Part shown: positions 3,113 to 31,900 of the stretch, one piece after another
Layout of the letters: each line of letters opens with the position of its first letter
Numbering within the stretch: the first letter of the stretch is position 1
NCBI RefSeq assembly: GCF_032191835.1
Contig: NC_083227.1
Span: forward strand, 10,478,001 to 10,542,000
DNA length: 64,000 nucleotides
Source of the DNA: Heteronotia binoei
Lineage: Eukaryota
Direction of reading: 5' to 3'
Position numbers and translations under genes: made by a program
Notes under the pieces: model-generated
The model's database searches: none
Seen by the model: only the letters and a program-made list of their open reading frames with translations
What the model was told of the DNA's origin: nothing

Positions 3113-3174
3113 TGTGTTGGTCTTTTTGGGCAACTCCCCAGCATTTACATCAACGTTAGGCTTAATAACATTAT

Positions 3175-3470
3175 GAGAACAAAACAAGAAGTCAAGTTGC
3201 ACCTTTTAAGGCCAGCTTAGTGTGGCCGGACCTGCCTGTCCCACATTGGTCTTGTCAGCCACCAGCGAGCCTGCAGCAAACGTGGACTATTGCACCCTTC
3301 TTAAATCTTCGTTCGCGAAGCCAAGCCGAGAGAGAGTTTTATTCAGAACGCAAGCTTTCGTGTGCTCTCTAAGCTTACGTCCTGAATAAAACTAAGTTGG
3401 TCTTAAAGGTGCCACTGGACTCCTATTTTGTTCTACTACTTCAGACCAACACGGGTGACCACTTGGACCT
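3175..3470. mobile_element. Penelope-like terminal-repeat remnant
   Basis: Motif aagcttacgtcctgaataaaact...cttaaaggtgccactggactcc...ttcagaccaacacgg. Related pieces at 15245-15445, 59085-59490, 62020-62090. Confidence 0.65.
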
Positions 3471-3471
3471 A

Positions 3472-6400
3472 CCGTATATACTCGAGTATAAGCCGACCCG
3501 AATATAAGCCGAGGCTTCTAATTTTACCCCCAAAATCTGGGAAAACTTATTGACTCGAGTATAAGCCGAGGGTGGGAAGCGCAGCAGTTACTGGTAAATT
3601 ACAAAATTAAAACACTGGTAGATACCAATAAAACGACATTCATTGAGGCAGTAAACTATTGTTCTGCAAGTAGAAAAGAGGGTCAACCTAAACAATATGG
3701 TATCAACAATAACTAAAAAGTACAAAACCTTAGCTCAATCAGCAACTACGGTAAGCTAAAACACAAGAGCTAAAATCCTTCAAAACTGGATTCCTCCTCA
3801 TCATCTGTATGCCCAAATAGAGCTTCAGCTTCAGTCGGTGTGAGGGTATCAGCGTAGATATTGCCATCACCACTGAGTTCGCAATCATCGCCATCACTGC
3901 TGTCATTTCTCATACACAGCGCTGTCTTCACTGCCCTCCATAGCATTACTAATGCCACATTTCTTAAAGGCACGTTGCACCATGTCTTCTGGAATATCTT
4001 CCCATGCATCACGAACCCACGTTGCTATCAGTTCTATGTGGGGCTTCTTTAGATTTCCAACTTTTGTCAGTTGGGCTTGACCAGATGACATCCATTCATG
4101 CCACATCTTTCGCACACGGTCTTTGAAAGGTTTATTTAAACACACATCTAGGGGCTGTAATACAGATGTAAGCCCACCTGGAATAACGGCCAAAGTAACT
4201 TGAGAAGACTTTGCCAATTTTTTTATGTCATCAGATGTGTGAGCCCTGAACATATCCCAAACTAGCAATGAAGGTTTTTTCTTCAAGGCTGCTCCTGGTC
4301 GTCCTTTCCAAATTTCTTCCAGCCATTTTTTTTGTTCCTTGTTCATCCATCCAGCCTTTAATATGTGCCCGCACGTTTATTCGTGGTGGAAATTTCACCT
4401 TTTTAGGCAATGTCTTCCTTTTAAAAATAATGACAGGCCGCAGCTTAGTTCCATTAGCCAAACATGAGAGAACGGCTGTGAAATGGGTTTTTTCATTTCC
4501 TGTGGTCCTGAGTAAAATAGTTTTGTCTGCCAAACTTGCCACAGTTCTGTTGCTGGGAAGATCAAAGGTCATAGGTGTTTCATCCATATTCCCAATATCT
4601 CCCAAGTCGTAGTTATGGCTCCTTCTTTGTTTTATGATGAATTAATGGAATGACATCACTTTTTCATCAAGGTCTTTTGGCAACTTCTGTGCAATCTTTG
4701 TTCTTTGCCGCAAACATAGGTCAAACCTGTTCATGAAGCGGGAACACCATCCTGCTGTCGCAGCAAAATTTTCAATGCCTGGTGCTTTTAGTTTGTCGTC
4801 TTTAGCCATTTGAAGGGCACGTAAGCGAATTCCCATGCGTGTTACACAGTAGCCATTTTGACGACACTCCATAACCCACTTATGCAATTCAGTCTCTAGA
4901 GCCCCATAGGGACTCGTTAAACCACGTCGAGCTTTTTTTGCCTTTGGGATTTTTTCCAAGTCAGCTTTCATTTTCCGCCAGTCCCTCACTTGTTTTTCAG
5001 CAACACAAAATTCCCTACTTGCAATGCTGTTATTGCTTTCTTCTGCTCTTGCCACAACTTTAAGTTTGAAACCAGCTTCGTATGACCTGCGTTTTTGTTT
5101 TGATCCAGTATTAGAGGTAGTGGGATCCATTTCTAACGGAATTAAAAAAAAGCATAGCGTATATTTCCCAATATATACGGTACATATGGGCACATATGGG
5201 CATTATACACAGGACAGCGGCATAAAATTGTTTGGGTGTGAATCCAGGGGTAAATGACAACCCCTGGATCTGTCACTGAGGAAGGGAGGGTGCTTCCGCG
5301 GCTCCCGCCTATGCACTCATCTCGAGTCCCTACTGGCCGCCTCACGCCCGCCATCTCCCCGCCCGCTGAAATGGCTTGCATCTGTTTCAGTCTGAGGTGA
5401 TAGGCACACCAGCCCTGCTGTTAGGCTGAAATTGATGCAAGCCATTTTAGCGATTCCTCTCGATTTCCCCCATCCCCAAGCTGCACAGACCTCCTGATAA
5501 CCACGTGGAGGGTTGTGGGAAGGGTTGTTAACAGGGATGGGCATGAGCCTTGGTTTGTGAACCGCGACTCAAGACAGTTTTTGTGATGAAATTAGGGTTG
5601 TGGGGAGGTTCATGGCCATTCCTAATCTTGATTTAGTCAAAGACTAAATTAGGATGATCTTGTTAATGACAATCTTTTTGGGTCTCTCAGATCTTAAATG
5701 TTTTGATGCAATGTAAACAGAAAATGTGTCACCGTACTTATTCTTTCTACAATTTAGACATCAGAGCTAGCTAATGTTACTACTTCCATCTTTATTTTGC
5801 AGAAATGGATGGCAGAGGCAATCAGCCTGAAGAATTCCTGTCCAGTGGAAACTCTCAGTGAAAGCTTTAAACTTAAACTGAGAGCTAAAAACTAATTTAT
5901 TTTTATTTAAATAGTATGGACATAATTTTTGTTTCAAAAGGGCTAATACAATTAAATTTTGTATGAGAATATTTTTTAGGAAAACTCTAGTCCTATAGAA
6001 AAAGAGTTATACTGATGTTACTTTTGTCTAGAAAGGGAAAATTTTGCCCACAAAATTCCAAACATACTCATCTGTTCTGAAAATGAACTTTAGTGTAGGT
6101 AGTAGATCCACTTAACAAACACAGAATCATCCCATTCTTAAATAGATCATATGAGTTTCTGTGCTGTCCTTAACAGTGTTGTTCACTGAACCCAAACCTG
6201 AAGCAATAACTTGTTTTACTCACTTTGTCTGTAGGAAGATTGGCTGGCCCAAAGGAGCCAATCCTGCAGGGAGAATTCTTCCTGCAGGGTGGGCTGGACC
6301 ATTAACACAATTCAAAGGAGGGAGAGCAAAATAGAGGGCAGCCATTTACCGTAAACAGAAAAGCTGATGGGCAGACCCTTTCAGCTGGTAGGTTTAAATT

Positions 6401-6826
6401 CTTGTAAGCCATTAAACCCCCTGGTTTGCTCCCCCTGCTTTGAAGGGGGGGTGGTGGTAAGAAAGATTGCTGAAATGGCCTCACGGCCGCCATCTCCCCA
6501 CCCGCCTCACGGCCGCCATCTCCCCGCCCGCCTCACGGCCGGAGGTTTGCCGCGAATCTGGTTCTGCATTTGCGTTCAGAACCCCGGGGGGGAGACCCTG
6601 AAAAAGTTACTCCCGCTGCATCTCGGGAAGGGGATTGTAGCTGCCTCGCTCACATAGGCGGAAACGTCTGCAATGCCTTTCGAAACCCTGGCTGCCGAGG
6701 AGCTGCCAACGCAAACACCGCCATCTCCCCGCCCGCCTCACGCGTGAGTCGAGTATAAGCCGAGGAGGGGGTTTTTCTGCCCAAAATTTGGGCAGAAAAA
6801 CTCAGCTTATACTCGAGTATATACGG
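3472..6826 (-). mobile_element. Full-length pogo-superfamily (Passer-type, DD35D) DNA transposon
   Basis: 22-bp perfect TIRs CCGTATATACTCGAGTATAAGC; TA target duplication at 3470-3471 and 6827-6828; subterminal repeats of the TIR core; transposase inside. Confidence 0.95.
3770..5130 (-). pseudogene. Passer/pogo transposase (Brinker-like + CENP-B HTH + DDE_1) with three lesions
   Basis: MDPTTSN...KRRSYEAGFKLKVV...LRQRTKIAQKLP is intact up to an in-frame TAA at 4642-4644. Then DETP, +1 frameshift in T8 (4326-4333), LVWDMFRAH...LQPLD (35 residues between the two D), and +1 frameshift at 3906-3908. Confidence 0.92.
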
Positions 6827-7044
6827 TATTTATTAACATTACGGTCACTGTTCCCGACCGGTATTATCGCATTTACATCTGATGACCCTGAAGCAGGGGG
6901 AGGGCCTCCAAACTGAGGGAACCCCTGCCCCCACCTGGGGATTAAACACAACGGGAAACCACAGTCCACAGATAATTCGAAATTTACAGAACCCACAGTG
7001 TACTAACAGGGTTGCCACTAAAATTTTATTTTTCATTTCCCGGA

Positions 7045-8290
7045 CTTAACATAAGAGAAGCCATGTTGGATCAGGCCAATGGCCCATCCAGTCCAACACT
7101 CTGTGTCACATAAGAACATAAGAGAAGCCATGTTGGACCAGGCCAGTGGCCCATCCAGTCCAACACACCGTGTCACATAAGAACATAAGCGAAGCCATGT
7201 TGGACTAGGCCAGTGGCCCATCCAGTCCAACACACTGTGTCACATAAGAACATAAGAGAAGCCATGTTGGATCAGGCCAGTGGCCCCTCCAGTCCAACAC
7301 ACTGTGTCACACAGTGGCCAAAAACCCCCAAGTGCCATCAGGAGGTCTACCAGTGGAGTTAGAAGTCCTTCCACTGTGCCCCTCTCCCAAGCACCAAGAA
7401 TACAGAGCGTCACTACCCCAGACAGAGTTCCAACAATACGCTGTGGCTAATAGCCAGTGATGGACCTCTGCTCCAGTTGTTGATCCAATCCCATCTTGAA
7501 GCTGGTTATGCTTGTAGCCGCCACCACCTCCTGTGGCAGTGAATTCCGCATGTTAAAAATCCTTTGGGTGAAGAATTACTTCCTTTTATCCGTTCTAACC
7601 TGACTGCTCAGCAATTTCATTGAATGTCCACGAGTTCTTGTATTGTGAGAAAGGGAGAAAGGGACTTCTTTCTCTACCTTCTCTATCCCATGCATAATCT
7701 TGTAAACCTCTATCATGTCACCCCGCAGTCAACGTTTTTGTAAGCTAAAGAGCCCCAAGTGTTTTAACCTTTATTCATAGGGAAAGTGTTCTGCCCCTTG
7801 AATCATTCTAGTTGCCCTTTTCTGTACTTTTTCCAATGTTATAATATCTTTTTTGAGGTGCAGTGACCAAAATTGTACATAGTACTCCAAATGAGATCGC
7901 ACCATCAATTTATACAAGGGCATTATGATACTGGCTATTTTCAGTTCCCTTCCTAATAATTCCCAGCATGGCGTTGCCCTTTTTTATTGCAATTACAGCA
8001 CACTGTCTTGACATTTTCAGTGAGTTATCCACCATGACCCCAAGATCTCTCTCTTGGTCAGTCTCTGCCAGTTCACACCCCGTCAACTTGTATTTATAGC
8101 TAGGATTTTTGGCCCCAATGTGCATTACTTTGCACTTGGTCACACTGAACATCATCTGCCACGTTGACGTCCACTCACCCAGCCTCGATAGATCTCTTCG
8201 GAGTGCCTCACAATCCTCTCTGGTTCTCATCACCCTGAATAACTTAGTTTCATCTGCAAACTTAGCCACTTCACTGCTTACTCCCAACTC
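7045..8290 (-). mobile_element. CR1 LINE 3' fragment with tandem 3'-tail units
   Basis: RT motif VAKFADETKLFR and (CATAAGAA)n tail. Paralog at 45345-46660 in the same + strand orientation. Confidence 0.9.
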
Positions 8291-9796
8291 CTAATCGTTA
8301 ATGAACAAGTTAAATTGCTTGTTCCTGTTGGAGTTTACAGAGTACCAGCTCTCTCACCCGCTTCCTGATTTCTCCCTTGCATAAAGGTTGCAAATGAGGG
8401 TTGTCTGCTTCTCTAGATTGCAGAAACCACCTCCTTTCTTGATGCTGATCTGCTTATTACACTTTCTGGAACCTGAAAGTGAAACTTTCCCAGCTTTGGA
8501 AAGTTCCTATTTGTTAGCATTGAGAGTTTACTTGAATTGAAGTTTGTATCTTGGTGTAATTTTTGGGACAATTGCAAAACAGATGTCCCTGCAGTTAATT
8601 TTGAAAGAAGCTGATATTGAATGTCTTTCTTCGACAAATATTTTTGCAGTTGAGACCTGTGTAGTTGTAGAGTGGAACATTTCCTTAAGGCTTGCATTTA
8701 TGCAACATGACCTATTCATTTTTTTTAAACTTGCTGTTATGTTTGAATGGTGGTCAGGGAAAGTCACTGCCACGGAAGGTGGTGGCGGCTGCAAGCATAG
8801 CCAGCTTCAAGAGGGGGTTAGATAAAAATATGGGGCAGAGGTCCATCAGTGGCTATTAGCCACAGTGTGTTTGTGTATATATATTGGCCACTGTGTGACA
8901 CAGTGTTGGACTGGATGGGCCATTGGCCTGATCCAACATGGCTTCTCTTATGTTCTTAAGCAATCACATTTGCAAAATTTACTTTGCACAGTGCAGAGTA
9001 GAAAGTGCTAGTTGTCTGTGAAATCCAACAGCAGCGAAACCCATTTGCAACCCTCTGCTGGATTTTAGCAGGAGACAAAACATCAATTCCAGACAGAAGC
9101 ATGACCCAAAAAACAGGCTTATCTTTATATGTAAGTTAAATGCAGTACTAACAGGTAGGGATGAAAACAGTTAGATGTTTAAAGTTTGTGAACTGCTAAA
9201 TGCTTAAACTAGCCTTGCTTTGAAAATGCTACAGGCAGACCATGGAAATCATGCAGGGACAGAGCTCAACAAACACATTAGGCTGGTCGCTGGGGGTGGA
9301 GCTGAGAAAAAGGTGGACTGGGAAAGGGCATCATTAAGCGGCTCACAATCTCCTTTATCTTTCACCCCCGCACAGACACCCTGCGAGGTAGGTGAGGCTG
9401 AGAGAGTTCTCCCCAAAGCTCCCCTTCCAAGGACTGCTCTGCAAGAGCTATGGCTGACCCACAATTGGAGGAGTGGGGAGTCAAACCTGGTTCACCCAGG
9501 TAAGAGTCCACACGCTTAACCACTACACCAAAACAAAATGCACAATTCTATCATCCTGAAACCATCACCGCCGCCCCTCCCCCTGGTCAGTGGAAAAATT
9601 GTCTTCCACAAAACCGGTCCTTGGTGCCAAAAAGGTTGGGGAACGCTGTTCCAAGGAATAACGTTTGGCTGTTTCTTTAAACAGATGCAGTTATATGGTG
9701 CATGTTTGCTTTAACCGATACCATGTTGCATCCAGTGCTTATTACAAAAAAACGCAGGCGACGCACAGTCCCAAGAGAGATATTTTCAGCCCTTAC

Positions 9797-9892
9797 CTGC
9801 CAATCCTTCCTCTTCATCGCAGCCCAAGAGAAACAGCCCTTCCTCCTCTTCTTCCAGCCGGGATATGAGGTCAGGTTTAGCAATCAGAGGTC
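9797..9892 (-). CDS. Gene A KRAB-B exon (96 bp, phase 1-1)
   Basis: aaacag|GA...GCAG|gtaagg; encodes (G)PLIAKPDLISRLEEEEEGLFLLGCDEEEGLA. Confidence 0.9.
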
Positions 9893-10843
9893 CTGTTTAT
9901 CACGGAAGCACACACACAAAATTAGACACCTTCTGTGTACCCATAGATTCAGCAATTCCATGCCAATAAGAACATAAGAGAAACCATGTTGGATCAGGCC
10001 AACGGCCCATCCAGTCCAACACTCTGTGTCACACAGTGGCAAAAAAATTTATATATACACACACACTGTGGCTAATAGCCAGACTCCTGTCCCTCTAGAA
10101 GAGGGGCGGCCAAACTTGCTTAATGTAAGAGCCACGTTGAATAAATATCAGATGTGTGAGTGCCGCAACGTGAACATAGGGAGGGAGGGAGGAATTAATT
10201 AATTGCTGAGCAGTCGGGTTAGAACAGATAAAAGGAAGTCCTTCTTCACCCAAAGGGTGATTAACACGTGGAATTCACTGCCACAGGAAGTGGTGGCGGC
10301 TGCAAGCATAGACAGCTTCAAGAGGGGATTGGATAAAAATATGGAGCAGAGGTCCATCAGTGGCTATTAACCACAGCATATTGTTGGAACTCTCTGTCTG
10401 GGGCAGTGATGCTCTGTATTCTTGGTGCTGGTGCGGGGTGGGGGGGCAACAGTGCAGGGCTTCCAGTGTTCTGGCCCCACTGGTGGACCAGACTGGAGGG
10501 AAGCCCCTGTTTAGATTACCCCACCATCTCCAGACTAGGCCTCCCCTGCTGGCACCTCTTCCGATGCCCTCGCTCACTCAGGGATTGCGTTTCCTGCATT
10601 GTGCAGGGGGTTGAACTAGATGGACCCTAGAGGTCCCTTCCAACTCTATGATTCTTTGACTGCCAGGCAGGGGCTCCCTCTCTGCAAAGAAGGCACAGAA
10701 CCCTCCTCACATCAGGAGGAGGAGAGTGGAGGGAGGCAGAGACCAGCCACTGGGACCAGGGCAGACAGCCTGGCCACGCCCTCCCTCCTGAAGGGCTTCT
10801 TTATCCTCACTCCTCACTGCAGGAAGGAGCAAAGGATCCTCAC

Positions 10844-10970
10844 CCAGAGAGGCCACGTTCCCATAATTCTCCAGCATGACTTCCTTGTACAGAGCTCTTT
10901 GCGTTGGACTCAGCAGGCTCCACTCCCCCGGGGTGAAATTCACGGCCACCTCTTCGAAGGACACCCCCGC
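10844..10970 (-). CDS. Gene A KRAB-A exon (127 bp)
   Basis: cttgcag|...CTGG|gtgagg; encodes [42 protein letters not shown]. Confidence 0.95.
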
Positions 10971-11444
10971 CTGCAAGACAGAGAAGGAAGTGTTTCTTTA
11001 CACCTGGAAAGCCGGTTCATTGGGGGCAGCCAGAAACAGAGTGAGGCAATTCAGAGGGAAAGGACGGCACAAAGAGGCGGGGAGAAGAGCCCCGTGGGGA
11101 CGTCTCCCTGTTCATCCCTCCTTGGGGGACTCTTGGAACTTAGGGGGGCTGTCCTCACCCCCAGTGGGGTAGCAGCCTTGTGGGGAAGAGGCCAGAGATG
11201 TCTGGATGATAAAAGGACTAAACCATATGCCATGGGAAATTCTATATTGTTATGGGAACATTTGGAGTTTGGACAAATCAATAGTTACGTTCTAATTTTC
11301 TGGCTTCTCCACAACAACCATCCTAGACAGGAGGGGGGTGACCGTTTTTCAGCCTCCCCAGTGGGGAATGCTAGACACAATGGGAAGGGGCCTGATCCTC
11401 TGAGCATTACAAGAGAGGAGACGTCCTTACTGTCTGCTGTACGT

Positions 11445-11990
11445 CTCCCCAGTGATTCTGGAGAGAAGGTGGCTGAGAGGCGATATGATCACCATCTTCA
11501 AAGACTTGAAGGGCTCTCCTATAGAGCAGGGGTGGCCAACGGTAGCTCTCCATGTTTTTTTTGCCTACAACTCCCATCAGCCCTAGCCAGCATGGCCAAT
11601 GGCTGGGGCTGATGGGAGTTGTAGGCAAAAAAAGCATCTGGAGAGCTACCGCTGGCCACCCCTGTTATAGCGGATGGTGTGGAATTGTTTTCTGTGGCCT
11701 CAGAAGGGAGGACTGGAACCAAGGGGTTGAAATTAAATCAAAAGAGTTTCCGGCACAACATTAGGAAGAACTTCCTGACCGTTGGAGCAGTCTTTCAGTG
11801 GAACAGGCTTCCTTGGGAGGTGCTGGGCTCTCCTTCCTTGGAGGTTTTTAAACAGAGGTTAGGTGGCCATCTGACGCAATTAAGAGCCTGTGAATTTAGG
11901 GGATGGTATTTGTGAATTTCCTGCATTGGGCAGGGGGTTGGACTAGATGACCCTGGAGGTCCCTTCCACCTCTTACAGTTCTATGATTCT
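11445..11990 (+). mobile_element. CR1 3' fragment with nested hAT MITE (11527-11664)
   Basis: CR1 ORF2 end (ELFSVASEGRTGTKGLKL) and CTATGATT tail. Paralogs at ~31300-31860 and ~42410-42960. Confidence 0.85.
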
Positions 11991-12028
11991 TCCCCTCCAC
12001 ACACACACACACACACACACTCACATAC

Positions 12029-12043
12029 CTGAGCGGACTGCAT
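12029..12043 (-). CDS. Gene A start exon, coding part (MQSAQ)
   Basis: GCCGCC-ATG CAG TCC GCT CAG|gtatgt; phase 0 joins KRAB-A in frame. Conserved in all four paralogs. Confidence 0.75.
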
Positions 12044-14458
12044 GGCGGCTCTCTTCCCTTCAGCAGACAGGGGAGACGGTGGAGGAGGCATCCAGGGAGT
12101 CCTTTTGCATGGGAGGGAGAGAAAGAAAGAGGGGGGAAACCCTATTAATCCATCCTCCTCCACCTCCCCTGGAAATGTTTCCTTCCAACCCCTTCCTGGG
12201 AGAGGAGTCCTTTTCCCTGCCTGAAACCACACTCCTCCCTCCTCCCCTCTGAGGGGGCCAAGACCTTCCCACTCCCCCCCCCCCGCAAAGAGAATGTGAG
12301 GGGAATGAGGTGAGAGAGTCCCTAGGGCAGGGGTCTCCAGCCCCCCAGCAGTGTACCGGTACTGGTCCATGTTCTATTAGCAACCAGGCCGTGAGTTGTA
12401 TAATTATTACATTATATATTACAATGTAATAAGACGACATTGTCCTGCCCTCCACTTCAAATTTTAAGAGTCTCAGAGCGACTCACAATCTCCTTTCCCT
12501 TCCTCCGCCACAACAGACACCCTGTGAGGTGGGTGGGGCTGAGAGGGCTCTCACAGCAGCTGCCCTTTCAAGGACAACTCCTATGAGAGCTATGGCTAAC
12601 CCAAGGCCATTTCCAGCAGCTGCAAGTGGAGGAGTGGGGACTCAAACCCCGTTCTCCCAGATAAGAGTCCGCACACTTAACCACCACACCAAACAAATAG
12701 AAATGAAGTGCACAATTGTATCATCCCGAAATCATCCCCCGACCCTGGTCTGTGGAAAAATTGTCTTCCACAAAACCAGTCCCTGGTGCCAAAAGACCAC
12801 TGCCTTAGAACAGGGGTGCCCAATGGTAGATCTCCAGATGTTTTTTTGCCTACAACTCCCATCAACCCCAGCCATTGGCTATGCTGGCTGGGGTTGATGG
12901 GAGTTGTAGGGAAAAAACATCTGGAGAGCTACCGTTGCCCACTCCTGCCTTAGAGGATGGGAGGGAGTGCCTGACTGGGAGAAGCCAGCTCAAAATTCAT
13001 TTCTCCCCGCACACAGAACACTAGCCCCACAAGGAAAAAAGTTCACCTGTGAGGCTTTTTTCTTGCGAGGAGATTTCCATGGAGGGAAGCCTCAAGGAAA
13101 GATGTCTTGAATCCAGGTGTGGATAAATCAGGAGAAAAGAGCATCTACTTTAAAACGTTCCTTGAATGATTATTGTCATAATAAAGCCTTGCTTCCATCA
13201 TACTTTTAAAATTACTTTCTCCTATGTGGTCACAGTGGCATGACGAAGATTTCCATCTGTCTACTTGATACGTTTGGGTTATTTCCCCGTTTTTTATGGG
13301 GAAAATATGAGAAAGTTTGTCAGATCTTAAGAGTTCAGAAAAATTCTCACAGGGGGGTTGATTTAATGGTTCTAACTGTTTGTTTTATTGTTGGTTTTGA
13401 ACTGCCGTATTGTGTTGTAATCCACCTTGGGCCCATTATGGGAAAGGGCAGACTATAAATTCGCAAAAATAGATTAAAAAAAATAAGCTGAACAATGGAG
13501 CCCAGATGCAAGGGGCGGGTTTGAGAAGGGGGAGAGTTAAGAAAAAAAGAACACAATAAAATTTAGAGGTTCTGAAGATCTACTCCTGTGAGCTCCTGCC
13601 CAAAAGGAGACCTGTGTAACCAGATTATAGATGCACTAGTCATTTGGCAAATTAATAAAAGAGAAGAGAGGAAGGAAAACTAGCAGCCATTGGGGCAGGC
13701 CTGGGGAATCTGAAATGGCCGCCTTCCCGCCTGGCTTGCGAAATTCAGCTCCACCCCAAAGCACCGGGCAAGATGGCAGAAAAGCCACGTGGAAACTCCG
13801 GCAGGGCCCCCAAATCCTGCAGGGTGCTGTGCAGAAGCAGGCAAATGCATCCCCCCCCCCCCCCCCAAGCATCAAACCTGGAGCAAATCCCCGGTGGGGA
13901 GAAGATCTGGCCCTCCAACTTCCATTCCCCCAGGACAGAAGGGGCACAGTCTTTGGATGCTTTAGATCTCCTCCAAAAATCCCCCCTTCTGCACTCTTCA
14001 GATTCCTCGTGTGGGTCTTCTGAGGGTCCAGTGACAAGGTCCTTCTGCCCCCCTGAGCCTTTTCTTCAGCCTCTCCGTCCCTGTCCCCCCCCCTCCCAAA
14101 TCCGCTCCTCAGCCCCCCACCCCACCCGTGCCCCCTTCTCCCCACCCCAAATCTCACTCTCCCCCCCCCCAAAAAAAAACTCCTTCCTAAATGTGCCTCT
14201 GGCAGCCACTTCGACTCCCTCCAGTCTCCCAAGGTGCCGCATTCGAATCCTGCGCTCCAGTCCGCTGATGGAACCACGTGACTCTGTGCAAAGGGGACCA
14301 GCGTGGGGCAGGAGGGAGGGTACCAAAGGAGGCAAGGAAGACACTGGGGGGGAGGGCGGGTGCTCTCTTTCAACCCCACTTCTTGACCCCCCCCCCCTGC
14401 TTTAAATCTTGCATTGCAGCCCCCAACCCACATTTCCCTACCTCCAAAGGCAGCTCAC

Positions 14459-14600
14459 CGGGTTCCCTCCCAGCCAGTGAAGCGGAAGCCAGACTCCAGG
14501 GCGCTTTCTTGCAAGGGGGCGGGGAAGGAAATAGTGCCCCCCCTTCTCCACAGCCCCGCCCTAAGTGCCTCTCTAGGACTGCCCCCCTCTCTCTTTCTCT
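14459..14600 (-). promoter_or_regulatory. Gene A GC-rich promoter / non-coding exon 1
   Basis: Donor CCG|GTGAGC conserved in A (14459), B (34183), C (39941) and D (59654), with GC-box and GGAAG motifs. TSS not determined. Confidence 0.55.
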
Positions 14601-14674
14601 CTGACCCTTCCAGACAGTCCTCATTTGGGGAAAAGGAAAGTTGGTGGAATTCACGAGCCGTGTTCCCTCTAAGC

Positions 14675-15005
14675 CAGGGGTGGCCAAATTTGCTTAATGT
14701 AAGAGCCACATAGAATACACATCAGATGTTTGAGAGGAGCAAGAAATGAACGTCAGATGTTTGAGAGCTGCAAGGAAGGCCGATAGATGTACCTGTGGTA
14801 TGTGGTATGGAGGGAGAGGTGGTAAGAAAGCAACTTGAACTTTAAATGCATTCTCCAAGCTGTTGGCTGGCTTGGCTTGGAGAAGTGACTTAAAGAGACA
14901 GCCTTCTCCGAGCTGGCTGATGGGGCAGTGGGGCCTTCAAGAGCCACACGATATGTGTGAAAGAGAGCCACATGTGGCTCCCGAGCCGAAATTTGGCTAC
15001 CCCTG
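14675..15005. mobile_element. hAT-type MITE nested in a second hAT MITE (~14659-15190)
   Basis: Ends CAGGGGTGGCCAAA...TTTGGCTACCCCTG; 8-bp TSD ctctaagc/ctctaaac. Confidence 0.8.
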
Positions 15006-15491
15006 CTCTAAACTGAGTTGGCATAAACTAGATCACAGATTTTTAGCCTCCAGCTCGCACGTTTTTGACTTCGCTCAGGAAGAATGGCCCCAGGGCGCAC
15101 TAATTAATGCAGGAGCTCACCACTTGAAGGCCAGGAGCTTGCAAAGTAGAATTTTGGCTCACAACACTCTGCAGCTGAGAGGGAACATTCTTCGTGAGTC
15201 ACATCTAAGGTGGCATTGAGTTCCCCCCTCAGGGACTGAGACCAACACAAAACGAAGTTGGCCTTAAAGGTGCAATCGACTCCTATTTCGTTCTATTCAG
15301 AAGGGAAGCTTTCGTGTGCATGCCCACTTCTTCAGACGAGGAATGAGGTACAGGAAGCAGAGCCACATAGAGCTGGCGGGGTTTGGAAAGCTGACGTTCT
15401 GAATAAAGGGAAGTTGGTCTTAAAGGTGCAATCGACTCCTATCCTTTTTTATGCGCTCCCAGCCGAGTTCCCGCTGCCGGCAGCGGCTCTG

Positions 15492-15560
15492 CCCAGCGAC
15501 TCGTGACGCTTTCAAGAGCGCGTCTCACCGATTGGAGAGAAATTGCCCCCCTCGGCCAAT
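15492..15560 (+). promoter_or_regulatory. MHC-type SXY promoter module (X1X2 box, Y box, CCAAT)
   Basis: CCCAGCGACTCGTGACGC (15492-15509), ATTGG (15531-15535), CCAAT (15556-15560). Same order as the HLA class I proximal promoter as recalled, with similar spacing. Confidence 0.7.
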
Positions 15561-15649
15561 CCCGACTCTCGCCCTGTGTGTTCCTCCCCTCAACCCCTCC
15601 GCTCCTCTCCCTGGGGCGAAAGGGCATTGCAAGAAGCGCACGGATCGAA

Positions 15650-15719
15650 ATGGGTTTGCCCCCGAGGGGGCTGCTGCTGAGAGGCGTCGTCCTCCTGCTG
15701 GTGGCGCTGCGGGGCTCCG
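15650..15719 (+). CDS. Signal-peptide exon, MHC class I-like leader; downstream exons not found
   Basis: MGLPPRGLLLRGVVLLLVALRGS + G|gtgagt; 70 bp, phase 1, in a CpG-rich island 90 bp after the CCAAT box. Confidence 0.65.
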
Positions 15720-16169
15720 GTGAGTCCCTCCCTCCGCGGGTGCAAAGTGTTCCAGGAGGGGCAGTGTAGAATTTACACGGGGGATACTGTGCAAAGTTTG
15801 GGGGTCGTTGTGAAACGCGTTTCCTGGGCTCCAAAACGGGGTGGGGGAAGGAGTCTGTTTCCTTCCGCTCCAGTGTTTGGAAGCGCTCCGGGGCGGAGAC
15901 CTGGCAGAAGTCCCGCCTAACTCAGAGGTGTCGAACCCATTTGTTAGAAGGGCCAGATTTGATATAAATGAGACCTTCTGGGGCCAGGGCATGTTTTATT
16001 TAAAGCTAGGTAGCAGAGATACAAACTTTATAAAGGATACAGACAATTAAATTAAATTTAAAAAAGACATTTAAAACATGCTTGAAATGTTAGCGCTTTT
16101 TGGTCTTAAAGGTGCTTGCTTTGTATTTCTCCCATGGGATCCAGGGAACTGGACAAAGGGAGCTCTGGC

Positions 16170-16220
16170 TCCTTCCTTCCTTCCTTCCTTCCTTCCTTCC
16201 TTCCTTCCTTCCTTCCTTCC
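16170..16220 (+). repeat. (CCTT)n microsatellite
   Basis: Direct reading. Confidence 0.95.
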
Positions 16221-16562
16221 TTCCTTCCTTCCTTCCTTCCTAGGGGACCAGGAAGAGAGGCTTGGCTCAGTAGCTCTGCTGTGTGATTGAGAAAGTATAC
16301 ACAAGCTCTGCCTTCAAGACTGAATCAAGACCTAGGTTTCCTGTCTCATTACCAATGCCAGTTTCTACTACCTCTCTGCATATTACATCTGATCCAATCA
16401 TCCCTGTTGTTGTCATTCGCCTGCTAATCTCATCTGCCATCTGAGATCACTCCACTTTCCGCTATATAGGAGAAATGGGCTCATATTCTAGCTGCATCCG
16501 AAAAAGTGATGGACCCAGGGTCTGATTCAGTAGAAGGCAGCTTCATATGTTCATATATGTAT

Positions 16563-16778
16563 GGGGAGGGACGGTGGTTCAGTGGTAGAGCACCTGCTTG
16601 GTAAGCAGAAGGTCCCAGGTTCAATCCCCGGCATCTCCAACTAAAAAGGGTCTAGGCAAGTAGGCGTGAAAAACCTCAGCTTGAGACCCTGGAGAGCCTC
16701 TGCCAGTCTGAGTCAACAATACTGACTTTGATGGACCCAGGATCTGATTTGGTATAAGGCAGCTTCGTATGTTCTCAT
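16563..16778 (+). mobile_element. tRNA-derived SINE (Squam3-like)
   Basis: Head GGGGAGGGACGGTGGxTCAGTGGTAGAGC and tail AAGGCAGCTTCATATG. Copies at ~36977-37179, 55368-55581 (-), 58614-58828. Confidence 0.8.
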
Positions 16779-17005
16779 AAGATGCCAAAATTTGGCCTGG
16801 ATTGTGTATCAGTGATCGCCACTGTCACAGTTCCCATAATGGGCTAAAAAAAAAAAAAATCCCCATTATGATTTCTTGGAAGGCAGCTGAGATTATTTCT
16901 GCTGGGTCTGTAAAAGCCTGGCAGAAAGCTTGGTGCACAACAGGGAAGAAATCCAACAGATCAGCCATAGCACCACCGTTAAAGCTGCCCCTAATGACTT
17001 TCTAC

Positions 17006-17420
17006 TAGGGTTGCCAATCCCCAGGTGGGGGCAGGGGATCCCCCGGTTTGGAGGCCCTCCCCCCACTTCAAGATCATCATAAAGGGGGTGCAGGAAATGT
17101 TTGCTGGGCACTCCGTTATTCCCTATGGAGACTGGGTATTCCCAAAGGGTATAATGGAGAATGGATCCATGGATATCTGGGGCTCGGGGGGATTTTTTTT
17201 TAATGTACAGGCACCAAATTTGCAGCATAGCATTCCATACCTCTTCTCAAAGTACACTCCAAGTTTCAAAAAGATTGGACCGGAGGCCCAATTCTATGAG
17301 CCCCAAAAGGTGCCCCTATCCTTCATTGTTTCCAGTGGAGTTCAATGATGCTTGTCACACCCTTGCTCCTGGCTCCACCCCACAGTCCCCAGATATTTCT
17401 TGAATGGGACTTGGCAACCC
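17006..17420. mobile_element. hAT-type MITE (TAGGGTTGCCA ends)
   Basis: Inverted ends TAGGGTTGCCAA/TTGGCAACCCTA; TSD ctttctac/ttttctac. Another copy at ~61502-62008. Confidence 0.8.
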
Positions 17421-18904
17421 TATTTTCTACCTGTGTTTGAAGATCGGAGCGGCCCAGCCTAGAAGAATAAAAGAAAGGCACCCTGTTGTGTATGTGGGCT
17501 CACACAATACATTTTAGCAGTGTTCCTGCCTGGCTCATTGGAGCCATGTGGACTGAGCTTGGGGACTCGGGAACAATGGGCAGTTGGTTCCAAATTCTTG
17601 CTGCCCTGAACCAGTCACAGGTGCGAAAGACTGAATGAGTTTTTAACATAATTTTTTTACATAATAATGTTAAGAGCTGAACTGGCCTATATTTCACTTG
17701 TTTACCTCATCCATTGCAACACCGTCTTCTATGGGAGTTTAAAACATTTCAAAATCATACCGGAACCCTGTATTACTACCATAAGAATCTAATGGAACCC
17801 CATTTGAAATTGTAGATACTTTCTTAACATTAAGACTATAACCAGTGAACTAATCCTAATTGGTTGCCATCCTCTAAATAGGAAATTTCCTTCTGAAAAG
17901 GTTGTTCCATAGAAAAGTCTCTCAGAACTTCTATGATTCCAGTTATGACAATTCCCACATTAGAACTCTCTTAACGGGGTACAGATTGTTTCTGCTGGTG
18001 TCTTTTAAATTTTACTGCAGATAAGCAGCTCTTAAAATTATTATGTAAAAAAATATTATGGTAAAGGGCCATTCAAGTGGAGGTATTGCAATGGGTTTCA
18101 GCCTAGAAGTTTTGTTAATGTTATACCTTTAAGAAACTAATGTGTAACACACAGCTGCATGGAATCATCAGCATGGTCTTTAAAGCAGAGTTAGCGGTTC
18201 AGTTTTTTACATAGAACATTTGTTAGTAGACTCTAAGAGGTTTTTGCATTCATTTATAGAAGAGGCACAGGACTGGCCTTAAAATTATACACTTAAGTGG
18301 TTTTGAGCTGATTTGCTGTCAAAATAATGGTTTGCTCAAAATTAAGAATAAATAATAATTATAGATAGTATAAGAGAAATTGGCCATCTAAGAGAACAGC
18401 TTGCCGCTAATAAAAAATATTGCAGAGAGCTATATTGGCCAGCAAACTCCAGAAGACTTGTGCATCTGGTTAAATTAATAAGTTTGGACTGGTTTAAGCT
18501 TCTAATACAAATGCACTTAAGTGTTATCGAGTGGTAAGTTTTTTACAACTATATATAAAATTAAGCATTACCTGTTTCCATGCAGCTTTGTGGTATGTCT
18601 TCTTGTAATTACCTTGATTTATTCCAAGATGAGAAAAACTGAGATAGAAGATGCTGCAGAAGAGCATTAGCACTGGGTTGTTACAAGAAACTGGTAACCC
18701 TGGAAGAAATACTCCTGAGGAAGTCCACTGATGAAATGAGCTCGTAGGACCTTTCTTGTAATATTGGAATGTGAGAATGGACCTCTGTGATAGTATTGTT
18801 ATGTGAATGGATATTGCTAGTGAAGTATACAAAGATATTGAAAAAAGGTTGTTAATGGTTTTATTAAACATTGTTAGCCAGTACATCACAGTATTTGTTT
18901 CTTT

Positions 18905-19530
18905 CACCGCCTCCAATCTTTCAGCACCTCACCTGTTCTCCAAGAATTCTCAAAAATATTGGCCAGAGGCTCAGAAATTACATCCACAAGTTCTTTTAGC
19001 ACCCTTGGTTGCAGTCCATCTGGCCCTGCGGACTTAGTTTCACTTCACAAAACTTGGTGTTTATGTACTACCCCTATGCCGATCCTAGGCTGCAGCGCTT
19101 TTCCTTCACCACGTGTTCTGTTTTTGACATGTTAAGCACCTTTTTCCTCATAAGAGAAGACTGAGGAAAAGTGGGAATTGAGCAGTTCTGCCCTCTTCAT
19201 CCCGTTACAATTTCACTTTTCTGTTCTCACAATGGACCTACCATGTCCTTGCTTTTTTTCTTGCTTTCTACATAAGAAAAGAACTCTTTTTTGTTGTTTT
19301 TAGCATCTCTCACTAGCCTAAGCTCATACTGGGCTTTAGCTTTCCTAATTCTTTCTCTACAAGCACTGGTGATTTGTTTATATTCATCCTTGGTTATAAG
19401 GCTCTCCTTCCATTTCCTAAGTGAGCCTTTTATATTTCTCAAATCCTTAGAAAACGGTTTATGGAGCCACCTTGACTTCTTTACGCTTCTCCCATTCTTC
19501 CTTCTCACAGGAATCATTTCTGATCGTGAT
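18905..19530 (-). mobile_element. Old CR1 ORF2 fragment
   Basis: RERIRKAKAQYELRL...KKEFFSYV. Inverted paralog of 54190-54800. Confidence 0.8.
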
Positions 19531-20191
19531 GTTGAGGGCTTTTTTTGTAGCAGAGTTAGACTCTAACCTTTGCATATTTGGCCACACACCCCTGATGTAG
19601 CCAATCCTCCATGAACTTACAGTAGGCCCTGGAAGAAGAGCCCTGTAAGCTCTTGGAGGATTGGCTACATCAGGGAGGTGTGGCCTAATATACAAAGGAG
19701 TTCCTGCTACAAAAAAAGCCCTTCTGCAGGCAAGAAGGACCAAGATATGTGATCATCAGTTGCTTCAATAAAGCCCGATAAGAACACCAATTCAAGTAGA
19801 ACCACCAATTTGGGTTTAACTGAACAAAGTTTCTGAGAGACTTCACTCTTCCAGTAAAATGAAATATTCAGCATCAGACTTTAGATCTTGTGTCAGCAGA
19901 ACAAACAGTGAACTCTTAAGGATCATAATGTATTAATTTAAAATAAAGCGTTACACAGGCAAGAATTTGATGTACAGGTACAAGTTTATCAAGTACAGCA
20001 AAATGTATACACTAAAATCTAGTAATGTTTTTCAAACTTTAAAATACATTGCACATTGATTTAAATGAATTACATTAGTTTACATTAATTTACATTTGTT
20101 TAAAATACATTACACAGGAGCAACACACCCCACACAGTAGTTTGTGCACATTTGTTACAGCATTTTGTAGAAAAAGAACAAGGGCCCCCTG

Positions 20192-20720
20192 TGTCAGTGT
20201 TGAGTTCCTTTAAGAACTAAACTGCTGAGTCAAGGTTATGCAACTAAAACTATACAGCTGTGATAGAAGTCACGAGAAGCACAGGTGTAGCTCATGTTAC
20301 CAATCAGGCTTAGGATTGGGTGGCTGCACTATATCTGTGGTAGCATTACCCACAGCACTTTGCCTTGGCTTACATGCCGTGCCTTGGCCTTGGGCGATGC
20401 TGGATGAATAACATATGTGAAGGAGAAACTCTGTTGAACTGTTACTTTGGAGGACTGACTGACTGACTACTTTGCTGATTCATGTAATGTATTGGACTGA
20501 CTTTGACTTCTCTATTGGACTGTGATTTGGTGCTGCATATTGGAGGACTGCTATTCTGTGTATGACCATTGCCTGCTTTGACTGCCTCTTACGTTTAACC
20601 CAAAATATATCTGTTAACTGGCTGTTGTGGAGTCTTTGTTTTTACCACAGTGTTCTGGAGTGCACTAAACTGTCTACTCACTCAGGGGACCACACCTTCC
20701 TACGCATTCAAACTCTGTCA
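20192..20720. mobile_element. Solo LTR (gene B 3' flank only)
   Basis: TG...CA ends and 5-bp TSD CCCTG (20187-20191, 20721-20725). Empty site in the gene C paralog (~50905). Confidence 0.8.
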
Positions 20721-20791
20721 CCCTGCTTTCAATTTTGGAGGTTTATATACATCTCACCATCATAATGAAAAAGTTAAGACAGGAAATCGAG

Positions 20792-22196
20792 TACCATACC
20801 ATACCAAACCTTTAACGGTGTAACAGTTGCAAATAAAAATACACAGAATATAAAAATTCAAACATTGGAGATATAATCAAAATGAAACTCAAAATGGAGC
20901 TTACAGATGCATTCATACATGGTCAGATTTAAATTGAAGGATGTCAGCCAAAAATTTTGCCACTGCCTCGCTAACCTCCCCCTCAGTATCGTTCAATAAA
21001 TAATAACAGGGTGGCAGAATAGACAAATCTGGGGAGAAAGAAAGCTTGCAAAATAAATCTTTACGGAGATTATGATGAAAGGAACAATCAGGCAATATGT
21101 GCTGAATGGAGTCAGGAATATTCGCTCCACAGGAACAGAGTCTGTCGCCTAAAGGGACTCGATGATATCTCCCTTGTAAAACTTTGGAGGGAAACGCATT
21201 TAGTCTAGTTAACATAAATGCCCTGTGATGACGTCGAATGGTTAAGTCTGATAGATAATGGGGCATTTTGCCGCAGAACGCATAAAGACCTAAGGAAGCT
21301 GGGGAGCAAATATAAGGGTCTGTTGGCCGTAGTTTCGTTTCCTCCAACTCCAACAGTCTCAATTTAATACATCTGAAGATATATGACTCATCAGAGGTAA
21401 AAAAATCAACCTCTATCCCCAACTGGTTAAGTTTGGACATAAGCACTGCTGTCCAGGATGAAATATATGGGTCTCTGTTCATACACTCAAGAAGGCTGTT
21501 AGGATCTGTTCTAAAGTGAATTTTGAGCCAGAATTTAAACACTGCAATCCAGGCTTTTGTCTCCACCAAAGACTGACCCACTTCAGAGCGGAGAGCAAAG
21601 TAGGGCACACATTTTGGCATACCAAGAATTTGTCTAAAGAATGAGGCTTGAATGCCCTGCTCTTTCCTGGTAAATGCTGAGATCCATATAGGGGTCCCAT
21701 AGAGAATTTGGGTTAGCGTTTTAGCTTTGAACACCTTAATTGCTGCCGGAACTAATTGGTTGCCCCTTGCAAAGAAAAACTGTTTGATATGAGCAACCGA
21801 ACATTTAGCCAAGTTGATGATGTTGTGACGATGTGAAACCCAGCTTGTGATTAAAAGTGATCCCCGAGTATTTAAAAAAAATTGTTTGCTCAATTGTTGA
21901 GTTGCCAATAAACCATCTCTGTGGGCGCCAGCAATTTGAAAAGACAACTACTTTAGATTTGGCATAATTGATAGAGTGAACTACAATTACAGCAGTCATA
22001 GAAGGCATTCAAATACCTTTGCAGGCCCACGCTTGTGTAAGAGAGGATGGTAGTATCATCAGCATAAAGTAATAAGGGGACCGCTCGGCCTGCTAGTTTA
22101 GGTGGATGACCATTAGTAGGGTTCAAAAATTGTACCAGGTCAGTTAAAAATAAATTTAAAAGATGCGGGGCCAGCACGCAACCTTGTTTAACCCCG
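20792..22196 (-). mobile_element. 5'-truncated non-LTR retrotransposon (RT end plus C-terminal Cys/His motif), clade unassigned
   Basis: LLLYADD motif; RLCSCGANIPDSIQHILPDC; 10-bp TSD GGAAATCGAG (20782-20791, 22197-22206); (TGGTA)n tail. Related older fragment at ~22560-23140. Confidence 0.85.
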
Positions 22197-22798
22197 GGAA
22201 ATCGAGATTTTAAGGTTGCATACTTTGGCAGCTCATGAGTTAAACTCTGATCTGGGACTTCTGACCTTGCTCAGCTAATGGATGCGTACATAAAAAATGT
22301 GGGGTCATTCCCCACTGCAAAAGAATTCATTTGTTGTGGACAGCTCCAGCAGTAGGTGAATGTGCTGGTCAGTATTTACTTCATATTTATTCCGTATTTT
22401 TATTGTCTTGCTTCATGCCCAAAGTATAGTTTATTTCATGTTGTATACTGACCAATATCTCTCTCTATCCATCCATCTATATCCGTTTTTGGAAATCAAT
22501 TTTGAACCTGTCTCTTAAATACTATTTTTTCTTATTCTCCACTTTTCCTAGAACAGCAGTGGCAAATTTAGCCACTTGGATACTGATATATTTTACCCTA
22601 TCTGACAATAGAAAGACCAATTTCTCTTGGTCTGTTTTTTTTAAGAGAGGTGAGATATAATGGGACATAAAAACCTACTTCGTTCAGCTTCATGTTTTAT
22701 GCAATGAAATACAGCATGAGGTAAGTCTTCAATGGACTTTTGATCACAAGCACATACTCTTTGCCCATATGGCAACCCTTTGTAACGACCTTCTATGG

Positions 22799-22935
22799 CA
22801 GGGGTGGCCAACGGTAGCTCTCCAGATGTTTTTTTGCCTACGATTCCAATCACCCCCAGCCATTGGCCATGCTGGCTGGGGCTGATGGGAGTTGTAGGCA
22901 AAAAACATCTGGAGAGCTACCGTTGGCCACCCCTG
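22799..22935. mobile_element. 137-bp palindromic hAT MITE (type copy)
   Basis: Long TIR CAGGGGTGGCCAACGGTAGCTCTCCAGATG; perfect 8-bp TSD TTCTATGG. Copies at 11527, 12811, ~31381, ~36128, ~41465, ~42744. Confidence 0.92.
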
Positions 22936-23349
22936 TTCTATGGCCATGACTGGTAGACTATCAAAACGAGCCCAAGTAAAGGCCTTTCTATATTTAGGAT
23001 TGTTTAAATTGGCAAAATATGGAGAGGATGTCAAGGGAGATGGAGATAATTGTTTATAGATCACGGTGGTTCTCAGTTTGTCAAATAAAACCATATCAGT
23101 CTGTGCACTCTGGTCAAGCAATCTTTGTTTAATAAGAGATTTGGCATCATCATTAAGATGGACAAATACTATTTTAATAACTTTGTAGTAATTTTTATTA
23201 AGGGGTGTTTTTATTATCTGTTATTAAATACAAAATTATTTTTTTCATAGATTCCACCCCCCCCCCCCCCCGGCAAAGCCTGCATGGCGAAACACATAGG
23301 GATTCTGTATAATTCAGTCATCTATCGCCGAGTATTTATATTTTATCCC

Positions 23350-25812
<2,463 letters not shown>

Positions 25813-27599
25813 CTGAAAGAAAGGGATACCTGAGGTGATAATATGACACTTTTCACTTATACCCTATTCTGATTCCAGTATCACCTAAAGACTAACAAGA
25901 CTTTCCAGGGAGAAGTTTTTGGAGTTAATTCTCCCTTTGTTGTATTTCATTCAGTCTTTCTATCCTAGTCAGGGGGTGTTGCAGATATGGAACTCAGAGG
26001 CAGAGGTATCATACACATGGAAATTAGCTTGATTAGAACAAGAGAGAAATGCTTAGGGGAAGAACAGAAATGCTTAGGAGCAGAAAATTAGCACCTGTGA
26101 GATAAGAATACTATGTTCAGCCCCGGAAGGTCCATTGTTCTGAATGAACTTAAGAACATAAGAGAAGGCATGTTAGATCAAGCCAACGGCCCATGCAGTC
26201 CAACACTGCGTCATGCAGTACCCCCCAAAAAGCCCCCCAACCAGCTGCAATCAGGTCCACCAGCAAGCCCAGAAACCCCACCACCACTGCCCCAAAAGCA
26301 CCAAGAATACAGAGCATCATTTGTCCCAGACAGACAGTTCCATCTATACCTTGTGCCTAATAGCCACTCACAGACCTCCTGTCTGCTCTATACGTTTATC
26401 CAATCCTTTCTTGAAGTTGTCATAAGAACATAAGAGCCCTGCTGGATCAGACCATCTAGTCATACTATAAGAGAAGCCATGTTGGATCAGGTCAGTGTCC
26501 CATCCTGTCCAACACTCTGTGTCACACAGTGGCCAAAACCCAGGTCCCATCAGGACGTCCACCAGCAGGCAGGGCCAGCCCTAGACTGTCTGGCACCCTA
26601 GATAAGGCTAATTTCTGCCCCTTCCCCACTGATAACATCACTTAAGTCACATGGGGGAACCCAATTCGGTGCCCCCAGAACTCCAGAAGCTCTCCCACAG
26701 TTGCCCCTCAAGCACCAAGAATACACAGCATCACCACCCCCAGAGTGCTCCATCTAGACTTTGTGACCGGTAGCCACTGATGGACCTCTACTCCATATGT
26801 TTATCCAATCCCCTCTTGAAGCTGTCTATGCTTTTAACAGCCACCGCTTGTAGTTTCAAATCGTCTCCAGGCTTTCTGAAGGGGTTTGACCCTCCTTGCC
26901 TGTCCTTTCCGTTTCTTCTTCATTAGCCCTCTCAAGTCGAGAGAAGTTACCCCTTCGAAAATTAAAAGTGGTTGTGCTGGTCTTTTTGGGCAACTCCCCA
27001 GCATTTACATAAATGTTAACCTTAATAACATTTCTGGTCACTGGTCCCAACTGGTATTATCACATTTACAGCTAATGGCCCTGAAACAGGGGGAGGGCGC
27101 CTCCAAACCAAGGGATCCCGCCCCTCTCAGGACTTCCTTGCCTGAAGCGCCCCTTTCTTGCATTGGGTTGCTTTTGAAGAAGAAAAAGAAGAAGATATTG
27201 GATTTATATCCCGCCCTCCACTCTGAAGAGTCTCAGAGCGGCTCACAATCTCCTTTACCTTCCTCCCCCACAACGGACACCCCGTGAGGTGGGTGGGGCT
27301 GGAGAGGGCTCCCACAGCAGCTGCCCTTTCAAGGACAACCTCTGCCAGAGCTATAGCTGACCCAAGGCCATCTCAGCAGGTGCAAGTGGAGGAGTGGGGA
27401 ATCAAACCCGGTTCTCCCAGATAAGAGTCCGCACACTTAACCACTACACCAAACTGGCTCTCCTGGGGGCGGTGGCGGCATATGCTAATGGGCTATGCTA
27501 TTGAGCTCCCCCACCTATTTTTCTACAAAACAACCCCTGGCATACTGTATGCACCAGACTCCTTCACAATCACATGCAACTTCACTCCATGCTCAGTTG

Positions 27600-28465: not shown

Positions 28466-30705
28466 CTGTTTATCACGAAAACATACACATAAATTAGATA
28501 TCTTCTGTGTACCCAAATATTCAACAATTCCGTCCCTCTAGAAGAGGGGTGGCCAAACTTGCTTAATATAAGAGCCACATAGAAGAAACATCAGATGTTT
28601 CAGAGCTGCAAGACATGAACATAGGGAAGGAGGGATAATAGATGGGGGAGGGAAGGAGAGGTAGAAAGAAAGCAACTTTAACTTCGGTTTGCCACTGCCT
28701 TCCCCAGTCATCTATACTCCCCACCCCCAGCAAGCTGGGTACTCATTTTACCAATCTCAGAAGGATGGAAGGCTGAGTCAACCTTGAGCCGGCAACCTGA
28801 ACCCAGCTTCTGCCGGGATCGAACTCAGGTCGTGAGCGGAGAGGCTGGAGTGCAGTACTGCACCTTTACCACTCTGCGCCACGGGGCTCTGGCCTTACAT
28901 ATTTAATTTCCCATTAAAATCAACTTTCTCATTTGCAAGATTCAACTATAGTTTCCTTTGCCCATACTGGTTTGGGACAATGTGAACTAGGATATGAAAT
29001 CCACTCAAAAGCAACCATTTAGTACTTGCTTACAGATCTCTCCAGAGTCTGAAGATGAGTTTTCCTTTTATAATTAACTCTGGAAATAGACCAGCTTGCT
29101 CACTTAAATGTGTTAAGATGTTTAGCCAAAGGGCATCCTTTTAAGTCTTCAGTAAAATGTGCCCTTTGTTCCCACAAAAACTAACAATTTCTTGTGCCTG
29201 GAAACAATTTCTTGTGCCTGGAATCTGAAATGATCCTAGCTAGTCACAATCAACGTTCCCTCTGACCTCAGAGCCTTGTGAGCAAAATTCTACTTTGTGA
29301 TCCACTGGTATTAAAGTTGTGAGTTACTGGCATTAAAAAGTTGTGAGCTGCTGCGTAAACGATTGTGCTCTGGGGTTATCCTTCCTGAACTAAGTCACAA
29401 ATGTGTGAACTGGAGGCTAAAAATCTGTGAGCTCACTCACGCTAACGCAGCTTAGAGGGAACACTGGTTGTGATCCTTTGCTTTTAAAAGGAGCTTTCTT
29501 GCAAAGGGTCATTCTGCATTTTAAAGGATCTGGGCAAGTATTTCCTCTGAATCTGATCAAACTGCTTCTTACCTTTGGGGTTTTAGGCATCTCTTCTCTG
29601 GGAATGAAGGCAAGGTACGGATGGAGAAGCTTTAAGCCAACCTTTTCCCCCCTGGCATTAGAGGGATGATGGCATAACACTGGCAGTTCTGTGCCTCTTC
29701 TCTGCCAAGCCGAGATGGAAATGCCAGCAGAGGACAAAGACGCCAGAGTTCCTCCTTCCACGGCCACTTCTCAGCCCAGGTTGGAGGGAAGGCCCTGCAC
29801 AGACGACCCCACCATCTGCACACCAGGCCTCCCCCCTGCTGGCACCTCTTCCGATGCCCTCTCACTTGGCTCAGGCTCAGAAGTGCCAGGCGGGGGCTCC
29901 CTCTCTGCAAGGAGAGCCCAGAACTCCTCCCCACATCAGAGGAAATAGAGGGATACGGAAGGTAGAGAAAGAAGAATTTTTCTCGCTTTCAACACAATAC
30001 CAAGAACTCGTGGGCATTCAATGAAATTGCTGAGCAGTCGGGTTAGATCGGATAAAAGGAAGTCCTTCTTCACACAAAGAGTGATTAACACGTGGAATTC
30101 ACTGCCACAGGAGGTGGTGGCGGCTGCAAGCATAGACAGCTTCAAGAGGGGATTGGATAAGCATATGGAGCAGAGGTCCCTCAGTGGTTATTAGCCACAG
30201 TGTATAGATGGAACTGTTTGGGGCAGTGATGCTCTGTATTCTTGGTGCTTTGGGGGGCACAGTGGGAAGGCTTCTAGTGTCCTGGCCTCCCTGGTGGACC
30301 TCCTGATACTACCTGGTTTATTTTGCCACTGTGTGACACAGTGTTGGGCTGGCTGGGCCACTGGCCTGATCCAACATGACTTCTCTTATGTGACACAGAG
30401 TGTTGGACTGGATGGGCCATTGGCCTGATCCAACGTGACTTCTCTTATGTTCTTATGTGACAGCGTGTTGGACTGGATGGGCCATTGGCCTGACCCAACA
30501 TGGCTTCTCTTATGTGACACAGAGTGTTGGACTGGATGGGCCATTGGCCTGATCCAACAGGGCTTCTCTTATGTTCTTATGAAAAATCATGGAGGGAGGC
30601 AGAGACCAACATTCAGACCAGGGCAGACAGCCTGACGACGTCCTTTCTCCTGAAAGGCTGCCTTATAGTCATTCCTCACTGCAGGAAGGAGCAAAAGATC
30701 CTTAC

Positions 30706-31885: not shown

Positions 31886-31900
31886 CTGAGCGGGCTGCAT
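31886..31900 (-). CDS. Gene B start exon, coding part (MQPAQ)
   Basis: GAC-ATG CAG CCC GCT CAG|gtatgt; acceptor catgcag at 31962. Confidence 0.75.

Follow-up and report, generated by a model that had tools for sequence, protein, structure and literature searches.

We identified, in a 64-kb stretch of DNA from the gecko Heteronotia binoei (the whole of which is hereafter called the window), a promoter whose X1-like, X2, Y and CCAAT boxes are laid out in a manner consistent with MHC-type S-Y modules, followed within the same CpG island by a leader exon and an intact splice donor. The leader exon is an orphan within the 64-kb window, and transposon pieces adjoin the island on both sides. We tentatively read the island as the stranded 5′ remnant of an MHC-family gene of SXY type, hypomethylated and probably still open, an explanation that we favour without being confident of it.

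Table 1 Features of the promoter-leader island and its surroundings, in window coordinates.
Feature	Position	Strand	Details
5′ duplicon of KRAB-ZNF gene A	10078-15245	-	KRAB-A exon 10844-10970
CpG island	15201-16050	.	GC 0.55, CpG o/e 0.72, 46 CpGs
Two copies of a transposon end, adjoining the 5′ side of the promoter	15235-15445	+	
X1-like box (putative RFX site)	15492-15500	+	CCCAGCGAC
X2 box, TGACGC, CRE half-site	15504-15509	+	gap to X1, 3 nt
Y box, ATTGG (inverted CCAAT, NF-Y site)	15531-15535	+	21 nt after X2
CCAAT box	15556-15560	+	20 nt after Y, 89 nt before ATG
Putative core promoter and 5′UTR	15561-15649	+	pyrimidine-rich, without TATA, without upstream ATG
Leader exon, coding part (23 codons from the ATG, plus one base of the next, split codon)	15650-15719	+	70 coding nt
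Splice donor GTGAGT, preceded by CCG	15720-15725	+	phase 1
AT-rich repeat, then (GGAA)n run	15921-16241	+	repeat copy at 2022-2133
tRNA-headed SINE, earlier labelled 'tRNA-Thr'	16563-16782	+	copies at 36977, 55365-55581 (-), 58615
tRNA-like SINE heads (ARAGORN Thr-GGT, Pro-GGG)	16568-16639, 36980-37038, 55505-55576 (-), 58619-58690		

The promoter-leader block is single-copy within the window, and its four boxes precede a putative core promoter (Table 1), with 158 nt separating X1 from the ATG. The string formed by the CRE half-site, the Y box and the CCAAT box (searched as TGACG, 15-25 nt, ATTGG, 10-30 nt, CCAAT) occurred once in the 64-kb window versus 0.013 times expected per window in 300 composition-matched simulated windows, while the joint degenerate promoter pattern, which was set after the sequence had been seen, was expected 0.003 times per window. 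Within 14800-15760 the only second TGACG lies at 15392, inside the flanking transposon end. For the X1-like box we compared the HLA-DRA X box, which has been printed as an XBP1 probe (PMC4806502), and found that 7 of 9 bases are shared with its X1 core, CCTAGCAAC, and that the 3-nt gap between X1 and the TG of X2 is identical in HLA-DRA. The canonical RFX half-site, GYAAC, is absent from the X1 box. No match to an ISRE, a kappaB site (enhancer A), a GAS or a TATA box was found in 14800-15760, where the transposon ends at 15235-15445 occupy the position expected for an ISRE or enhancer A, and no S box was recognisable at 15465-15476, the place expected for it about 16 bp upstream of X.

The leader exon encodes the 23-codon peptide MGLPPRGLLLRGVVLLLVALRGS. 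Its ATG, flanked by G at both -3 and +4 (a good Kozak context), is the first within the 160 nt before the donor and likewise the first to follow the CCAAT box. Judged by inspection against the features of a cleavable signal peptide (a basic n-region, an h-region of 7-15 residues and small residues by the cleavage site), the peptide carries basic R6 and R11, a hydrophobic run of VVLLLVAL and an end, RGS plus the split G-codon, that places small residues near the cleavage site. We counted as a leader-like exon any ATG that opens 15-33 stop-free codons with a basic N-end, a hydrophobic stretch of 7 or more and no acidic residue, and that leads to a GTRAGT donor; the window holds one, versus 0.08 expected per window in composition-matched simulation. 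Around a donor set in simulated sequence of the same dinucleotide make-up as the island, such a leader had a probability of 6e-4; both chance figures are somewhat optimistic, the criteria having been fixed after the peptide was seen. Even after a tenfold correction, a chance reading frame stays unlikely. Because such a leader is this rare by chance, the exon was almost certainly coding at some time.

Searches for relatives of the leader were of little use at this length. A word search of the frame returned none, and an exhaustive search with the leader plus its read-through (39 aa) gave 0 matches, results made uninformative by the shortness of a 23-residue signal peptide and of the query. Exact-product look-ups of three ORFs (two across the island, plus the ZNF exon) found no record. 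The RNA fold of the exon region was less stable than that of shuffled sequences (z +1.9), and we therefore see no structured RNA there. Leader exons in phase 1 are a feature of class II genes and B2M, of most members of the immunoglobulin superfamily and of many genes for secreted proteins.

The CpG island satisfies thresholds of at least 200 bp, a GC content of at least 0.5 and a CpG o/e of at least 0.6, and is the sole island in the 64-kb window outside transposon sequence. Its unique core spans about 15453-15920 (about 470 bp), and CpG o/e reaches a maximum of 0.93 at 15400-15599 versus 0.29 on average over the window. Elsewhere in the window, CpG-rich sequence occurs only at 5101-5400 and 6351-7000, both inside a pogo-type transposon with DDE_1 and Tc5 domains (Pfam). 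The 5′ units of the zinc-finger genes (13.6-14.8 kb) are rich in GC and poor in CpG, with o/e values of 0.06-0.57. The earlier note had described an intact X1X2-Y-CCAAT module, a hydrophobic 23-codon leader and a phase-1 GTGAGT donor in CpG-rich sequence. The module is present at the positions given for it, with the amendments that X1 lacks a canonical RFX half-site and that no S box is recognised; the leader and donor are indeed intact and correct in coordinates and content, and the CpG richness was borne out by the o/e of the island as a whole, which is likewise far above the window mean.

Pfam scans of stop-free translated segments found no MHC_I, C1-set, V-set, Ig or MHC_II exon on either strand, the segments covered being those of at least 50 aa in 15240-64000, at least 30 aa in 15.7-23.4 kb and at least 55 aa in 1-15240 on the + strand, and those of at least 70 aa on the minus strand with zinc-finger arrays left out; scans of this kind could miss badly decayed exon remnants broken by stops. 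The families matched in the window were KRAB, C2H2 fingers, RVT_1, DDE_1, HTH_Tnp_Tc5 and BrkDBD. In the 48 kb downstream of the leader on the + strand, Pfam detected no recognisable domain exon that would continue the gene. An initial statement that alpha1, alpha2 and alpha3 exons are missing was thus upheld and now extends to both strands and to any Ig-type exon, and for MHC_I itself the interval 15720-23300 yielded no + strand match with segments down to 30 aa (15.7-23.4 kb).

On the 5′ side, the KRAB-ZNF duplicon terminates at 15245. The 5′ unit of gene A recurs directly at 30590-34760 and in inverted orientation at 44335-37950, with 86-95% identity, and on this sequence likeness the three 5′ units are a recent segmental duplication of the KRAB-ZNF cluster. 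Homology of copy A to both paralogues ends at 15245, while copies B and C run on together for 216 bp, which places the island a little way beyond the duplicon; the possibility that it forms part of the duplicon was rejected on the same ground. An assembly gap at 38264-38477 falls within the flank of the inverted copy. Just upstream of the promoter, a 33-nt stretch is found at both 15254-15286 and 15410-15442, 156 nt apart and with 97% identity. Both copies carry CAATCGAC, unlike other copies of this transposon end, which have CCACTGGAC or similar, and this suggests that the 33-nt repeat arose by local tandem duplication of the transposon end.

On the 3′ side, intron 1 is cut off about 200 nt after the donor by the AT-rich repeat and the (GGAA)n run, the left edge of the repeat being placed at about 15921 from the drop in CpG and GC. 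Repeats, the SINE and a reverse-transcriptase remnant fill the interval from the island to about 23300, where gene B has its 3′ end. The LINE remnant, at 20916-22270 (-), has an RVT_1 match at 21956-22270, and its 344-aa open frame at 20916-21947 (-) has no Pfam match and is probably a C-terminal part of ORF2. The zinc-finger exon of gene B (23314-25852, -) is open over 513 aa (24311-25849), with more finger-coding stretches in other frames at 23474-24088 and 23691-24176, so that from its reading frames the finger array looks frameshifted or in possession of a decayed tail. We also considered and rejected a solo-LTR identity for the island: its termini and flanks show no target-site duplication and the donor is misplaced, retroviral splice donors not being located in LTRs.

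Four of the five tRNA matches in the window proved to be the heads of a single SINE family, with copies of about 200 bp that are 89-92% alike (Table 1). The only match outside a SINE copy, a tRNA-Leu(AAG)-like one at 55595-55676 (-), lies directly beside one, and an Rfam search returned tRNA-like SINE heads only. An argument that tRNAs mark an extended-MHC-like region finds no support here, with four of five matches being SINE heads and no tRNA cluster present.

The S-X-X2-Y enhanceosome serves MHC class II, class I, Ii and B2M genes, where RFX, CREB and NF-Y act with CIITA or NLRC5. The gecko block resembles these modules in the order and orientation of X1, X2 and Y, but differs in that its S box is unrecognisable, its X1 has a G where RFX half-sites have an A, it is accompanied by neither an ISRE nor enhancer A, and its factor sites are putative. 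In NLRC5-bound modules the S box lies 16 bp and the Y box 20-22 bp from the X box, the spacing is critical, and the S box is the element that confers NLRC5 specificity (PMC4374748); the gecko gap of 21 nt from TGACGC to ATTGG falls inside their 20-22 bp, on a count that varies with the choice of motif edges. In HLA class I promoters the SXY module lies no more than 200 bases from the start codon (PMC3987962), and the gecko module is likewise less than 200 nt from the ATG. An S-Y module has also been described at the non-MHC gene RAB4B, where vertebrates in general have kept it and ChIP experiments show it occupied (PMC1802633). Modules of this type can thus act at genes unrelated to the MHC, and one left without its gene may still respond to CIITA.

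What stands of the earlier interpretation is therefore a non-random promoter and leader unit, orphan and of MHC-type S-Y layout; what lacks support is its class I identity, with no ISRE, enhancer A, recognisable S box or class I exons in evidence, and likewise the argument from tRNAs. The caveat attached to that interpretation, that a class II or other SXY gene was possible, sets the right level of claim: class I, class II and beta2-microglobulin-like genes cannot be told apart as the source.

Ordinary CpG-island promoters often combine a CRE with paired NF-Y sites, and the unit could instead be the first exon and an ordinary promoter of this kind from some other gene for a secreted or membrane protein, for example a butyrophilin-like or immunoglobulin-superfamily gene. 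That gene would be either cut short at this site or continued by exons outside the window, and the resemblance to SXY would be coincidental. We consider this possible but on the whole doubtful. Real as they are, the leader and the phase-1 donor are of a generic kind, the S box, ISRE and canonical RFX half-site are all missing, and S-Y-like modules are known at non-MHC genes such as RAB4B (PMC1802633). Coincidence would nevertheless have to produce an X1-like box in exact HLA-DRA register to X2, together with a fitting X-to-Y spacing, in a joint degenerate pattern (post hoc, as stated) with an expectation of 0.003 per window. The 48 kb downstream on the + strand hold no recognisable domain exon, and intron 1 of such a gene would have to contain three KRAB-ZNF genes.

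The position of the island, about 200 nt past the 5′ duplicon of gene A, would suit a promoter for non-coding transcription, or one that serves KRAB-ZNF gene A (-) in an alternative or bidirectional role, and the leader would then be a chance frame. A donor-like GTGAG on the minus strand at 15528 also agrees with this, as does the lack of a CpG island in the three duplicated ZNF 5′ units (o/e 0.06-0.57). However, a leader-like frame ending at a donor has a chance of only about 6e-4 in island-like sequence, no other ATG lies between the CCAAT box and its own, which is in a good Kozak context, and paralogues B and C have no such island past their duplicon ends, which indicates that a ZNF unit can do without one; we judge a non-coding or zinc-finger promoter unlikely. 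Undecayed CpGs could further mean that the fragment arrived recently, as a captured or duplicated gene piece or as part of a young transposon or LTR, and has no function here. The remaining two CpG-rich stretches in the window do sit in a young pogo-type transposon, and transposon ends are found on both flanks of the island. Yet the window contains just one copy of the island, transposon protein domains are missing from it and from the adjoining sequence, and its candidate LTR ends are not bounded by a matching target-site duplication, so that a recent arrival appears improbable.

Under the favoured reading of a stranded MHC-family 5′ end, the surviving parts would be the proximal promoter, the 5′UTR, the exon for the signal peptide and the first 200 nt or so of intron 1, and the gene body would have been lost or separated as transposons and the KRAB-ZNF duplicon accumulated around the island. 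The NF-Y, CREB and possibly RFX sites probably hold the island unmethylated in the germ line, and we propose that the island CpGs survive because of this hypomethylation driven by bound sites. If the sites do hold the island unmethylated, the promoter is probably still firing, and its transcript would use the donor at 15719, end in downstream transposon sequence and encode no MHC protein; as an alternative course, the transcript might extend toward zinc-finger gene B, antisense to its 3′ end. The retained CpGs are the one observation that points to an active promoter. A more far-reaching possibility is that the promoter outlived its MHC gene and is interferon-, CIITA- or NLRC5-responsive, and that through the donor at 15719 it drives transcription, non-coding or antisense, over the 3′ end of gene B. 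We hold this to be very unlikely; if true, it would mean that an antigen-presentation regulatory circuit is tied to the control of a zinc-finger gene.

Truncated MHC fragments are already a known kind and are common in well-studied MHC regions. Human MHC class I fragments of this sort comprise HLA-N, -P, -S, -T, -U, -V, -W, -X, -Y and -Z (PMC2848993). Like them, the gecko stump would be a partial MHC-type gene among unrelated genes with incomplete coding capacity, and HLA-Z, a class I fragment situated in the class II region, offers a parallel. It differs from the human fragments in keeping the promoter and leader exon only, so that its MHC class is unnameable, and in still forming a CpG island.

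A stump alone leaves the understanding of MHC regulation unchanged. Gene predictors may fuse the leaders of such stumps to unrelated exons, and a promoter left open can send antisense transcription into neighbouring genes. If the favoured reading is true, the island would be a dated relic of MHC-family gene turnover on a gecko chromosome, and it would mean that a growing KRAB-ZNF cluster, together with transposons, can strand a promoter and its leader exon.
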